From the NCBI GenBank assembly GCA_033442325.1, contig JAWQFM010000025.1, forward strand, positions 424,638 through 488,637: a stretch of DNA of 64,000 nucleotides. The letters run 5' to 3'. This document shows positions 13,277 through 18,936 of this stretch, piece after piece. Under the pieces are notes generated by a model, which worked only from the letters and a program-made list of their open reading frames with translations, had not been told where the DNA came from and searched no databases. This DNA is from Salpingoeca rosetta. Its lineage: Eukaryota; Protista; Choanoflagellata. Position 1 is the stretch's first letter. Every line of letters starts with the position of its first letter. A program made the position numbers and the translations under genes.

Positions 13277-16200
13277 ATGTCCACCACCAGAGCGACTGTG
13301 ACGCAGGCGACAGTGAACGACCTGCAGCAGGCAGTGTCGACGTTTGGCCTGATACAGGACGGCGAGCGACACGTTGTCTCATTCTGCCATCAAGGTACGC
13401 CAGTGATTGCTCAAAGTGTGCAGGTTTACGCGAACGTCGCCACCGACCCATGTCTGTCTGTATCCTTTCCAAGCCCTTGAGTCTATTGGCTTGTGTCCTC
13501 CGCGCACTCACGTACACACTTCTCTCTGCTCACGTACGCACTCCTCTTGGGCACTTGCTTTGGTAGGCTCAAGGATGTTTGAAGAAGGCGTGCGGTGCGG
13601 CCATGTCCTCGCAGAAGTTGTTGCAGACGATGTTGTGGAGACAACAGAGGTACTTCCGGTTGGAGGTGACACTGTGACATCTTTCGTGATCACACAACCA
13701 GTGACTCCCGCCCGTCTCATGGACCAAACCTTTGCGCAGAGGCGTAAGTCAATTGTTGCTCATCTCATGCTTACTGACGCCTCATCGTGCTGCCTCTCCC
13801 CCCCAAACAACCCACGTTATGAACCGTCATCGACACCTCCCTACCACCAGCCCACGCACGCTATGAACATCGTCTTGACGCGCTCACAATGGCGCTGCCT
13901 GTGCACCTGTGTGGTTAGTTCGAGGCCATCCTGCGACGCTTGTGTTCCAACACGCGCCCAGGCTACCTCCAGATGTCATACGCCGTCGAGACACCGACAT
14001 GTGTCTCCTGTTGGCGCAATGCCTGAGCAACGGAGGCAGCAATCAAGAAGTGGCAATTCAACGGCATTTCAACCACAACCTCGGCAAGCGCGGCGGATAC
14101 CACCAGCTGAAGGAGATTGCCTTCACACGCAATGCTGCTGAAAGCCACCACTTCATCGTCGCGTTTGGCAGCGACGATCCGCTCAACGGCGAAGACACGA
14201 CCCCCGTGTACATCTGCTTCCAGAGCACGCAGACGCTGCAACACGCCATGACGGACATGACGGCGTTTGCCGTCCCTCCAATGAGCGAGGCCATCGAGGG
14301 CCGCGTGCATCTGGGCTTTCTTCGCGTGGCTGAGAAGATCCCCGTCGAGCCATTTGTGCGGTTGCTCCACGGGAGTCCAGGTGACAGGAAGAAGTACCGC
14401 TTGGTGTTCTGCGGCCACTCGCTCGGCGGTGCGGTGGCACAGCTGGTGGCGTTGCGCGTGCTGCTTGAGTGCCACCAGCACGACGACCGCAGAAACGTGC
14501 ACGTGATGACATTTGGCGCACCTCTTGTCGGAGACAGTGCTTTCGCGCAGCAGTTTGAGCGGGAGATTGGTGGTGCTGACGTGGCTCACAGCAACTGCCG
14601 GTTCCACGTGTACAGCAACGACATTGTCCCACGCGTGCTGACCATGCTCACGCGTGCATTCAGCTCCCAAGCAGACGCTTCTAAGAGGTCATCACTTGTC
14701 GCGCAAGTTCTCAACAAGGCCTTCAGCCAGCCAGAGAGCCGCAGCTCATTCTTCGGCAGCCTTACATCTGTCATTTCGCAAAACGCGAAGGGGAGCCTTT
14801 GGGTGACACTTACAAGCTGTCTTGGCTCCCACGTGAAGCAATGTGTGGAGTGCGACTATTCGCCCTTTGGCACGTACCTGATTTTTCAGGACTCAAAATG
14901 GAAGCCATACAACAACCCAAATGAGATTCATGCCGCTTTGTTCAAGAACGACACACTTCCGCAGCTGAAGGCCGAGCTCCTCAAACATCACTTTCTGGAC
15001 CACTATTGCCAGGGCCACCACTTGAATCGACACGCATGGTATCCGCAGCAAACGCCCCGAATCCCAACATTCACCCAGCATCCCGACTTCTCCGCCCCTC
15101 GAAAGTTGACGTTCCAGTCAGACCACTCGAGCACGACGTCGACAGCCAGCAGCCAACAGCACCATCTTACATTCACTGGCGACGGGTTTGCGTTTGTCAC
15201 GCACGCGACAAGCTCCCTTGATGGCCACAAGCGCAAGTTCACGCCTGTGCTTCTTGACGGCGGCAAGCGGCTGGAGGTGACGATTTCATGCACGACACAA
15301 CAGGCAAAGGCCGTGTTTGATGTGCGACTTTACACCGTATTCACAGCGCCTGCGAGCACAGTGCGTGTCGATGTCACTCAACTCTCAAAGTTGCCCTTGT
15401 TTGGCAAGCTGGCGCAGGCCGCAAAGCTCTCACGTCACGACGTCATCAACCAAGTATGCTGCGGTTTGTGTGTGTGTGTGTGTGTGTGTGTGTGTGTGTG
15501 TGTGTGTGTGTGTGTGTGTGTGTGTGTGTGTGTGTGTGTGTGTGTGTGTGTGTGTGTGTGTGGAGGCGTGTGTGGTGCATTTATGTGTGCTGCATTTATG
15601 TGTGCTGCACTGATCTGTGGGACGAACCAAACCTCAAATGCTGACAGGCGCATCTGCCCTCACCTACACTCGCATGTTGCTTCTGCAGGCTTTCCTGCTC
15701 ACCCTGTTCTCAGATGACAAGGCGCAACAAGAAGAGGTGCTACAGATCCTTGCGCAGTTCGAGGAGGGCGACGTAACACCGGCTGCGAAACGGTGGCAGG
15801 AGAGGGGCAAGGACGAGGCAGCAGCAGCCCTGCGTGAAGTCGTTGGCTCCACGATTTCGATCGAAGAACTCAAGTTCCAGGATGAGCGCACAAAGCCACT
15901 GCAAAAAGCGATTCAAGTCATGGCGGAGCAAGAGGGCGAGGGCCAAGATACAGGTGCTCTGGCAGACGCAAGCAAGCATGTATTTGGAGTGGACACCGCA
16001 GACGCGAAGGCTTTGGCGGGCAAAATGAGGAATGCAGGTGAGGATGTGTTTGTTTGTGTATTTTGTGTGTGTGTGTGTGTGTGTGTGTGTGTGTGTGTGT
16101 GTGTGTGTGTGTGTGTGTGCGATGTGTTGCCGTGAAGCTGGTGTGGGCGATTTCTTGCAACAAAAGGCTTGTGCAGCAAACTCCACTTTGAAGGCGCTTT

Positions 16201-18936
16201 TGTGTTGTTCTTGTTGCACGCATCGATGTCAATTCACCTCAGTTATTGTTCCTCGTGCGACTTTCAACGTGGTTCATGGCGCACCTAACAGTGCACAAGC
16301 ATCAGGTGTATGATCAGCCCGCTGGGGGAGCACATACAGACGTTCACGAACAACGGCTGCCGTACCAACGCGCCTCAGAATGGTTCCGGAACGACAAGAG
16401 CACGTGTGCACAGGATGCGCTTCGGGCGGTTTCGTGGTCAACACTGGACGTGCTCGCGCGTACGGGGTACCCAGACATTGCTGTTAAGAAGGGGCCTGGC
16501 ATTGTCGCGCTTACCACTGCCATCACCATCATCATGGCTGGCCTTACCTTCTTCTCGGTTGGTGGGTTATTTGCGGGCATCTACTTCCTGTATGCAGAGG
16601 CTGGCGGCCTCACCATGCTGACAGGCAGCATCGCTGCATTCGCGCTTGCGGGAGTACTTGGGGATGTTCTAAACAAGCTCCACGAGAATCAGGCGGAATA
16701 CCAGAAGAATCTTCAGGTGTGGTGTTGTGGGCATACTTGTGTGCGTGTGTGTGTTTGTGTGTTGATGTTTGTGTGTTGATGTTTGTGTTTGCGTGTGCAT
16801 GTGTGTGTGTGTGTGGGTATGCGACAAACGACGTGTGTACGTGCATACACGGACGTCAATGCATTTTCATTCGCAGCATGCCCACACCGCTCACAACACA
16901 TGTACTGCACACGCACAAACGTACACACGCACAAACGTACACACGCACAAACGTACGCGCACACACGCAAATCACCCACTGCTATGGTACCAAAACAGCT
17001 GATGCTTCAACTTCTTGGCCTGGATGAGGACGAGGATCTGCCGGTCGATCCAACGTACTTTGCTGAGAAGGCCATTGTGCAGAAGGGGATTGCACAGAAG
17101 ATGAAAGCAATTGTGGGCCACAGCATCGACCCAGCCGCCCTGATGTCTGCGGAATTCCGGGCCAGGTACTTCTCCAAACTCAAGCAAGGCGATCCCCTGT
17201 TCAATGTGAAAGACGACGACACAGCGCGCAAGCGGGCGTTGCTGTTCCTCCGCGACGTCTGGCTCATCTTCCGCCTGCGAGAACTGATGGCAGGGACGTT
17301 TATGTTTGGCGTCGTCGGAACCAGCAAGACGGGCAAGGTGTGTGCTTGTGTGTGTGTTTGTGTGTGTGTGTGTACATGCGTGCGTGCGTGCTTGTGTGTG
17401 TGCGTGTGTACGTGCTTGTACGTGCGTGCGTGTATGTGTGTGTTGTGTGTACGTGCACGTGTGTGCATGAGCTTGCATGGGAGTCGCTTCCAATGCGTCT
17501 GCCAACTCCTGCAAACACTCGTTTGTTCACTCCACCCTGGCGTCATGCGTGACATTCGTTCTTCACTTCAGAGCACGTTCCTCTCTCGGCTCAAGTTCAA
17601 GTCCAACCCCGACTTCGCCGTCAACTCGACGCGCATTGAGTTCTACAAGTGGCCCGCCGCCCGGCACTTTGTCTTTGTTGATTTCCCGGGCAGCGACGAC
17701 GCAACCAAGAAGGTGCGGCGTGCCATGTAGTTACTGCTGCTGATGATGTTGTTGTTGTTGCTGATGTTGTTGTTGCTGTTGTTGTTGATGCTGTTACTGC
17801 TGCTGCTGCTACTGCTGTTGTTGTTGTTGTTGTTGTTGTTGTTGTTGAAAGGGGCGAATAGCGTTTGACGTGTTGCGGTGTATGTATTGGCTCCCTCACA
17901 TGTCTCGACATCTCGGTTGTTTTGCATATCCATCCAATTACAGGTCGAGGAGGCGTTTGCTGCGCACTATTCGATCGTCGATGCCTGCATCTTCGTCGTT
18001 GAGGCAGACAAGCCAAACACCGCACGTGTCAAGGACGCACTCCTGGCAGCTCTCCGACGAGAGGTACGAACTGTTTTGTGAATGTGTGTGTGAATGTGTG
18101 TGTTAATGTGTGTGTGCAACTCAAATATCTCAAGGCCACTTTGAGACCTGCATTGATGTTTCGTCACCCACCACCCGTGACATGGATGCAGGTGCCCATT
18201 TTGCTGTGTTTGAACAAGGCGGACTTGCTGCTCCCGCGCCCCCTTCAGCAACAGCAGGATGAACTGCCAAGTGCTCAGTCACCAGACTCTGCTGCAGCCG
18301 AGGTGACCTCTCCAGTGGACGACGACGATGATGATGATGATGACGGATATGATGATTTCGAGGACTTTGGCCCTTTGGTACGAGTCGTGTCATTGACTGG
18401 GTGCACGCACGCACACACAAGCACGCATCAACAAGCATGCACGCGCACATGCGTGTGCGTGAGGCTAGCCAGAGAGCGAGTGCCGCTGAGTGTGTGTGTA
18501 TGTGTGTGTGTGTGTGTGCGTACACGTACGACAGTATCTTCTGACGCTTCTCACTGCATGGGTCTGTTTTGTGTTCTGGGTTGTCGTGGTGCAGACACCG
18601 TTGCGTACACAGGAAGAGCTGCACGACATCCTGCGGGAGAAGATACAGCTCACCCTTGGAGGCGCCAATCCACACGTGACCATTGACAAGGACTCTGGCC
18701 TCCACACTGTCGAAGTGCAACGCGCGTCTGGAGACAAGCAGACGTTCTCAACATGCCTGACTTGCTTTGCACCGCACCTCGGTCCACCTGTGACCCCTTC
18801 GGACCTCCAAGAACGCGCCATCGTCACGCCAAAGGGCGTCTTGAAGAAGTGGCTGTTCCCCACGCTCAAGGCGTGCGAGATTCCCGTGGAGGAACCAGAG
18901 TACAAGGAAATACTCGCCTACCTCAGGCGACGATAG
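13277..18936 (+). CDS. Class-3 lipase + TM hairpin + P-loop GTPase fusion protein (copy A), 10 exons
   Basis: Exons 13277-13394, 13567-13743, 13919-15453, 15689-16037, 16292-16716, 16999-17337, 17572-17712, 17944-18063, 18192-18377, 18595-18936, all GT-AG and phase-compatible. Lipase motifs VHLGF, CGHSLGG (14413-14427), TFGAPLVGD, DIVPR; two hydrophobic segments in exon 5; GTPase G1 GTSKTGK|ST, G3 DFPG, G4 NKAD. Confidence 0.85.

Follow-up and report, generated by a model that had tools for sequence, protein, structure and literature searches.

Lipases and GTPase switches are, each on its own, well understood. Class-3 lipases, from the Rhizomucor and Rhizopus enzymes to the lipase-like plant proteins EDS1 and PAD4, are recognised by the Lipase_3 domain, a GHSxG elbow, a Ser-Asp-His triad and a VHxGF motif. 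Among GTPases, Era, EngA (Der) and EngB act in ribosome assembly as soluble proteins that have KH or tandem G domains; mitofusin/Fzo1, atlastin/Sey1, BDLP, IniA and LeoA combine a GTPase with a helical stalk and a hairpin that leaves both ends of the protein on one side; and the IRG proteins (Irga6, Irgb6) and the IRG-like GM4951 are membrane-targeted GTPases with N-terminal helices. Here we describe PTSG_09189, a gene of the choanoflagellate Salpingoeca rosetta that lies in a stretch of 64,000 nucleotides (C25:424638-488637, hereafter the window) and encodes a class-3 lipase and a TRAFAC-type GTPase in one polypeptide, with a probable membrane hairpin between them. A sequence-only reading of the window had singled out this locus as a lipase-GTPase fusion of unusual architecture, hidden by introns. 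We find that PTSG_09189 had already been annotated and belongs to a conserved, eukaryote-wide family for which no characterisation was found in the literature.

Splicing of ten exons on the forward strand of the window (Table 1), all of them with GT-AG borders and with intron phases that are continuous through the model, gives a single open frame. With exon 3 beginning at 13919, the spliced product is an exact match to P0175 (PTSG_09189, Salpingoeca rosetta, 1243 amino acids (aa)), onto which the ten exon peptides, each 100% identical, can be laid end to end; full-length analyses were run on P0175, whose sequence equals the spliced window model. The public gene for this protein (GL832983.1:437914-443573, GCA_000188695.1) covers the same span of 5660 bases and is annotated as one gene, and both NCBI and UniProt list its product as hypothetical, with the two Pfam domains. 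The proposal that a lipase, a hydrophobic hairpin and a TRAFAC-type GTPase belong to one gene thus agrees with public annotation, in which this locus and its 90%-identical paralogue each appear as one 1243-aa protein, and the expected motifs were all located, including a Walker A sequence (GTSKTGK|ST) split by intron 6. Concealment by introns holds for the open reading frame (ORF) track, where only fragments of the gene are visible, but not for the databases, in which the gene was already annotated. Taken together, the ten-exon structure and the lipase-hairpin-GTPase domain architecture can be stated with very high confidence.

An alternative acceptor for exon 3 at 13973 was set aside for the annotated site at 13919, which brings in 18 more residues (RGHPATLVFQHAPRLPPD); because the 53%-identical paralogue within the window conserves them, 13919 is the better acceptor. 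Most introns of PTSG_09189 contain microsatellites of the (GT)n or (GTGC)n-like kind, and intron 7 has a (TGC/TGT)n array in their stead; the long Cys/Val and His/Thr ORFs that the ORF track shows are spurious products of these repeats.

Table 1 Features of the PTSG_09189 locus and its genomic copies (positions are those of the window unless a contig is named)
Feature	Position	Strand	Description
LRR-like, polyQ neighbour gene	11448-13268	-	Divergently transcribed; context, outside PTSG_09189
PTSG_09189	13277-18936	+	Ten exons
Exon 1	13277-13394	+	Start codon, residues 1-39; 100% identical to P0175 1-39; GT donor
Exon 2	13567-13743	+	Residues 40-98; 100% identical to P0175 41-98; most variable between paralogues
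Exon 3	13919-15453	+	Residues 99-610; class-3 lipase, then Ig-like beta sandwich (about 15076-15453)
VHLGF	14305-14319	+	Lipase motif
GHSLG	14413-14427	+	Lipase motif, S266
DIVPR	14620-14634	+	Lipase motif, D333
KHHFLDHY	14983-15006	+	Lipase motif, H456
Exon 4	15689-16037	+	Residues 611-726; charged region; 100% identical to P0175 611-726
Exon 5	16292-16716	+	Residues 727-868; hydrophobic hairpin
First hydrophobic segment	16501-16593	+	Residues 797-827
Second hydrophobic segment	16609-16662	+	Residues 833-850
Exon 6	16999-17337	+	Residues 869-981; helical stalk, invariant R962, first part of P-loop
P-loop, first part	17317-17337	+	GTSKTGK
Exon 7	17572-17712	+	Residues 982-1028; P-loop end, switch I NSTR, G3
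P-loop, end	17572-17577	+	ST
DFPG	17680-17691	+	G3 motif
Exon 8	17944-18063	+	Residues 1029-1068; core strand and helix of G domain
Exon 9	18192-18377	+	Residues 1069-1130; G4; acidic insert
NKAD	18213-18224	+	G4 motif
Asp run within the acidic insert	18318-18344	+	Nine consecutive Asp
Exon 10	18595-18936	+	Residues 1131-1243 and stop codon; G5-like LTCFAP, C-terminal helices
Intron repeats	15470-15565, 16050-16120, 16720-16990, 17340-17470, 17740-17840, 18080-18120, 18480-18530		Microsatellites
Window paralogue	51112-56186	+	53% identical; tblastn 33-67% for exons 3 to 10, same order
Copy on C25	C25, about 226-231 kb	-	94% identical over exon 3
PTSG_02605 (P0021, 1243 aa)	C4, about 570-576 kb		90% identical
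LRR-like gene beside a further copy	C25:231745-233247		polyQ/(CAG)n
LRR-like gene beside a further copy	C25:472978-474459		polyQ/(CAG)n

The lipase assignment was expected for the spliced protein and is clear: Lipase_3 (PF01764) scores 80.7 bits on P0175 (cut-off 22; residues 197-340) and 80.1 bits on exon 3 alone. We compared P0175 with 25 relatives at 17-23% identity and one close paralogue in a family alignment (A1), in which the triad residues S266 (GHSLG), D333 (DIVPR) and H456 (KHHFLDHY) are invariant, together with H229 and G231 of VHxGF, G264, G268 and Y461. The domain is therefore a class-3 lipase whose Ser-Asp-His triad is intact, and is predicted from these residues to be active. 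It follows a variable N-terminal region of about 100 residues. When the lipase part of the family profile was compared with Protein Data Bank (PDB) sequences, matches included PAD4 (4e-26), fungal lipases (2e-24) and EDS1 (1e-23). In contrast to class-3 lipases, however, PTSG_09189 devotes only the N-terminal third of its 1243 residues to the lipase, continues with a beta sandwich, hairpin and GTPase, and has no secretion signal. It also differs from EDS1 and PAD4 in having no EP domain: no Pfam match to the EP domain of EDS1/PAD4/SAG101 was found on P0175, and the beta sandwich stands after the lipase in its place.

At the other end of the protein, two GTPase families pass their Pfam cut-offs on P0175, namely GTP_EFTU (40.9 bits, cut-off 26.5, residues 999-1091) and MMR_HSR1 (34.1 bits, cut-off 21.9, residues 972-1077), whereas Dynamin_N (residues 1012-1074) stays under its cut-off of 27 with 14.5 bits. 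Pfam and NCBIfam searches of exons 6-10 taken singly returned nothing, the pieces being too short, as did a PDB phmmer search with exon 6 alone; IIGP (PF05049) gave no match to E = 1 on P0175, and the GBP and AIG1 Pfam families likewise gave none. The G motifs are canonical from G1 to G4 and occur in order, with G1 (GTSKTGKST) at residue 975, NSTR at 999, DFPG at 1018, NKAD at 1076 and a G5-like LTCFAP. In the GTPase part of A1, R962, G975, G980 and K981 are invariant; S982, the switch-I Thr (T1000) and the Asp and Pro of DxPG (D1018 and P1020) are nearly so. In P0175, DxxG is followed by Ser, where Ras has its catalytic Gln, and a residue other than Gln at this position is reportedly typical of Era/EngA/EngB GTPases and also of GTPases activated by dimerisation. 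A long acidic insert between G4 and G5, encoded by exon 9 and containing a run of consecutive Asp, is confined within A1 to the S. rosetta copies.

Comparison of the GTPase part of the family profile with PDB sequences returned mitochondrial EngA (mt-EngA; 2e-20), EngB (4e-13), Era (1e-9) and Irgb6 (2e-9, over 227 profile positions). The fold of the G domain was modelled with a family alignment on P0022, the nearest intronless relative (residues 640-1138, L010:1926-3422), and not on P0175 itself; in this model the G domain and the preceding stalk helices reach predicted local distance difference test (pLDDT) values of 80-95 (stalk 80-92). Structural alignment of the P0022 model with VIA-align matched EngB (Z 16.3, 2.8 Å over 160 residues), mitochondrial IF2 (7po2; Z 15.8, 3.2 Å over 167 residues), mitofusin 2 (MFN2; Z 15.0, 5.1 Å over 247 residues, stalk helices included), EHD4 (Z 14.8, 3.2 Å over 182 residues) and IniA, Fzo1, BDLP and LeoA (Z 12.8-14.0, 5.0-6.5 Å over 209-222 residues). 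A Foldseek search with the 499-residue model gave generic GTPase matches only, among them Irga6, IIGP1 and GM4951, and the ESM Atlas led only to small bacterial MMR_HSR1/Dynamin_N/IIGP GTPases. By its motifs and profile matches, the C-terminal domain is a genuine TRAFAC GTPase that is closest in sequence to the Era/EngA/EngB group (MMR_HSR1). The expectation of an MMR_HSR1-, AIG1- or IIGP-like GTPase was borne out through the first of these families and GTP_EFTU, and the relative does model as a P-loop GTPase.

Set against described GTPases, the domain has its best relatives in both sequence and fold in Era, EngA and EngB, with which it shares the order of G1-G4, a DxPG-type G3 and the lack of Gln after DxxG; it differs from these soluble factors in being fused to a hairpin and a lipase. 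With the dynamin-like proteins it would share the combination of GTPase, helical stalk and hairpin, and matches that include the stalk reach Z 13-15 over 217-247 residues, yet at a root-mean-square deviation (rmsd) of 5-6.5 Å. Unlike in the fusion dynamin-like proteins, Dynamin_N is below its cut-off, the hairpin lies N-terminal to the G domain instead of after it, and a lipase is attached. The modelled likeness to hairpin-anchored dynamin-like proteins appears real, but does not discriminate. As for the IRG proteins, PTSG_09189 resembles them in its profile match to Irgb6, but it has no IIGP match, its scores are not above those for other GTPase families, and IRG proteins carry no enzyme domain.

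Between the two enzymes, a beta-rich region had been noticed after the lipase, and AlphaFold2 of 15031-15453 (residues about 485-610) gives an eight-strand sandwich with a pLDDT of 84.9. Searches for a specific relative of this sandwich found none, the matches being generic Ig-like/E-set folds only (Foldseek E >0.003; VIA Z <=7.9), and exon 4, which follows, encodes a charged region, described as helical in the sequence-only reading, and has no Pfam family above threshold. Exon 5 encodes two hydrophobic segments separated by a five-residue spacer (AEAGG). Kyte-Doolittle hydropathy over 19 residues, starting from residues 794-804, ranges from 1.66 to 2.06 and includes the five highest values in P0175, in which just 18 such spans reach at least 1.6. 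Most of the 26 relatives in A1 have a hydrophobic segment at the same position, about 100-150 residues N-terminal to the P-loop. No hydrophobic signal peptide was found, the top Kyte-Doolittle value in residues 1-60 being 1.06. Since a signal peptide is lacking and the two hydrophobic segments are only five residues apart, PTSG_09189 probably sits as a hairpin in a membrane, or in the monolayer of a lipid droplet or the endoplasmic reticulum (ER), with lipase and GTPase on the same face; that face is presumed to be cytosolic because GTP is available there.

To place PTSG_09189 among other proteins, the stalk and GTPase profile was applied to the lipase matches, and about 35 distinct proteins (40 entries with near-identical cluster members) were found to fit it as well, mostly at E 1e-90 to 1e-15 and mostly with 900-1250 residues. 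These relatives come from Amoebozoa (Cavostelium, Stygamoeba), Heterolobosea (Willaertia magna), CRuMs (Rigifila), Rhizaria (Paulinella), Fungi (Basidiobolus, Gigaspora) and animals (Hydra vulgaris, Owenia fusiformis, Branchiostoma and the rotifers Brachionus, Adineta and Didymodactylos). The features of the family, namely a Lipase_3 triad, a hydrophobic segment before the P-loop, R962, a C-terminal G domain and a length of about 900-1250 residues, are all present in PTSG_09189. In transcriptomes of Cavostelium, Stygamoeba, Paulinella and Rigifila, a single ORF (called complete in the first three) spans both domains, direct evidence that the family makes one polypeptide; the Hydra, amphioxus, Owenia and rotifer gene models likewise have both domains in a single ORF, and P0022 is encoded by one ORF on a 3.6-kb contig that lacks introns. 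None of the family matches that were looked up is from a standard model organism, and the spread is apparently patchy. An exhaustive search with exon 3 led to P0021 at 90% identity, and the C-terminal part of P0021 led in turn to P0175. Word searches with the C-terminal region returned two S. rosetta proteins only, and a profile word search nothing further. A scan of IMG/VR and GTDB genomes seeded with the lipase motif recovered only ordinary lipases, the hairpin and GTPase half being present in none of 160 loci. Our search of the literature, a review of conflict systems included, found no description of the lipase-hairpin-GTPase architecture or of PTSG_09189 and PTSG_02605. The architecture, on which no published study was found, is not specific to this locus but belongs to a family spread across eukaryotes.

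Two relatives come from environmental or unassigned sequence. P0025, a homologue of 903 residues, is encoded at L171:10001-12712 on a metagenomic contig of 65.8 kb (ENA ERZ26165376, ctg350736) that has small genes densely packed on both strands, mostly with no Pfam match, and a MutS gene; this contig looks like a giant-virus (Nucleocytoviricota) rather than a cellular genome. P0001 (535 residues; L007, Logan SRR24908322, 1.9-kb contig) is the sole close relative outside the S. rosetta genome and is 48-51% identical across the lipase and beta-sandwich exon; the sample is possibly another choanoflagellate.

Within the S. rosetta genome (G000; 55.4 Mb, 68 contigs), a search for copies found four (53-94% identity) in which the lipase exon and the P-loop exon keep the same order and spacing. 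The paralogue in the window, which the sequence-only reading had placed at 50272-56198 with all motifs recurring, does show them in the same order (VHLGF, GHSLG, DIVPR, QYHMLMHY, GTTKTGK, DFPG and NKAD), and its P-loop is likewise interrupted by an intron at the same position. Between PTSG_09189 and PTSG_02605, the ratio of nonsynonymous to synonymous substitution rates (dN/dS) is 0.31 overall, 0.07-0.14 in exons 6 and 7 (0.07 in exon 7) and about 0.6 in the N-terminal exons, with exon 2 64% identical at 0.62; exon-wise comparison of the pair for positive selection found no exon with dN/dS >1. Judged from these codon comparisons, the pair is under purifying selection. Exon 8 has no substitutions in 40 aligned codons when compared with PTSG_02605 (L008; dN = dS = 0), while dS along the gene ranges from 0 to 0.47 and is 0.1-0.47 in the neighbouring exons. 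Identity of exon 8 amid such variable dS suggests that copies on different contigs have undergone gene conversion.

An LRR-like polyQ/(CAG)n gene adjoins three of the four lipase-GTPase copies (Table 1), the two further LRR-like neighbours being 91% and 62% identical to that beside PTSG_09189, and the LRR-like and lipase-GTPase genes seem to have been duplicated together. As the LRR-like family has 70 matches in the genome, its link with the lipase-GTPase is only suggestive.

For the way in which the two enzymes might work together, we lean, with little more than even confidence, towards a mechanism of hairpin anchoring and GTP-driven G-domain assembly that controls the lipase. The hairpin would anchor PTSG_09189 in the membrane with the lipase and GTPase facing the cytosol, and GTP binding would then cause the G domains to dimerise or oligomerise on the membrane. 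Such assembly would position or unmask the lipase, limiting lipid hydrolysis to a time and place under nucleotide control. Dimerisation is proposed because the nearest relatives work without a catalytic Gln and because the fold resembles that of GTPases which hydrolyse GTP on dimerising. Several observations weigh against this mechanism or parts of it. The coupling of GTP to the lipase is purely our inference, and the fold matches to GTPase families are tied (Z 13-16) and do not single out the dimerising, dynamin-like mode. About half of the family has DFPH for DFPG (column G1021) and no NKxD, which suggests a subfamily that may have altered nucleotide chemistry. As for the anchor, a few relatives (P0100, P0058) have no clearly hydrophobic segment at the hairpin position, and in AlphaFold2 of the relative P0022 the hairpin region, which is rich in Gly and Ala, has a pLDDT of only 28-37. 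Finally, no transcript of the PTSG_09189 locus was retrieved.

A possible, though doubtful, alternative is cell-autonomous immunity, in which the GTPase would sense or assemble on a target membrane in the manner of IRG, GBP and GIMAP proteins and the lipase would attack that membrane. Defence is suggested by the four diverging copies in one genome, by the LRR-like gene of an expanded family beside three of them, by a spread that looks patchy, with no standard model organism among the matches looked up, by the profile matches to Irgb6 and to PAD4 and EDS1, lipase-like proteins of plant immunity, and by the one homologue on a giant-virus-like contig. Against defence, no exon exceeds a dN/dS of 1 between the paralogues, no IIGP, GBP or AIG1 Pfam match and no PADLOC match was obtained, the adjacency to so large an LRR-like family may reflect chance and segmental duplication, and EDS1 and PAD4 do not score better than ordinary fungal lipases. 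In its boldest form, which we regard as more speculative still, lipase-hairpin-GTPase proteins would be ancient, unrecognised effectors of cell-autonomous defence whose G domains, assembling under GTP on foreign or damaged membranes, turn on the attached membrane-degrading lipase, kept in choanoflagellates and many invertebrates and with a copy possibly captured by giant viruses.

Housekeeping remodelling at the ER, mitochondria or lipid droplets has a similarly tentative standing; here the GTPase would tether or shape membranes as mitofusin or atlastin does, and the lipase would edit lipids locally. The layout of GTPase, stalk and hairpin with both ends on the same face is that of mitofusin, Fzo1, atlastin and BDLP, and the P0022 model matches MFN2, Fzo1, IniA, BDLP and LeoA, but the long matches have the high rmsd given above, Dynamin_N falls well short of its cut-off and the domain order differs. 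The strong conservation of both catalytic sites from amoebae to amphioxus, and the purifying selection seen between the paralogues, fit remodelling of organelles or lipid droplets, as does the mitofusin-like layout, equally well as the observations above fit defence; the lack of a standard model organism among the matches looked up would nevertheless be odd for a core function.

It is less probable that the hydrophobic stretch is a buried helical core and the protein soluble or peripheral. The segments are indeed rich in Gly, Ala and Thr, AlphaFold2 confidence is low there and some relatives are weakly hydrophobic at this position, but the hydropathy from residue 794 onward stands out in a protein with so few comparable spans, and the position and two-segment form are kept in most of the 26 relatives. 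Quite improbable is a non-catalytic lipase scaffold like EDS1 and PAD4, with the protein acting in signalling as an adaptor that depends on GTP. These two plant proteins do rank with the best PDB profile matches, but the invariance of Ser, Asp, His and VHxGF in 26 very divergent members argues for catalysis, and Pfam finds no EDS1 EP domain. That adjacent lipase and GTPase genes were wrongly merged in annotation is hardly credible despite the missing transcript, given the same order and spacing in all four copies, the continuous intron phases, the single ORF of P0022 on its intronless contig and the transcripts of four other lineages that carry both domains in one ORF.

In summary, from amoebae to amphioxus a lipase and a GTPase are covalently paired on a probable membrane hairpin with both active sites intact, and no functional description of this pairing was found. 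S. rosetta is a transfectable and editable close relative of animals, in which direct testing is possible. If GTP gates the lipase, the family would represent a new way to confine lipid hydrolysis in space and time, and would provide a testable link between effectors that degrade lipids and the GTPases that remodel membranes (mitofusin, atlastin, IRG).

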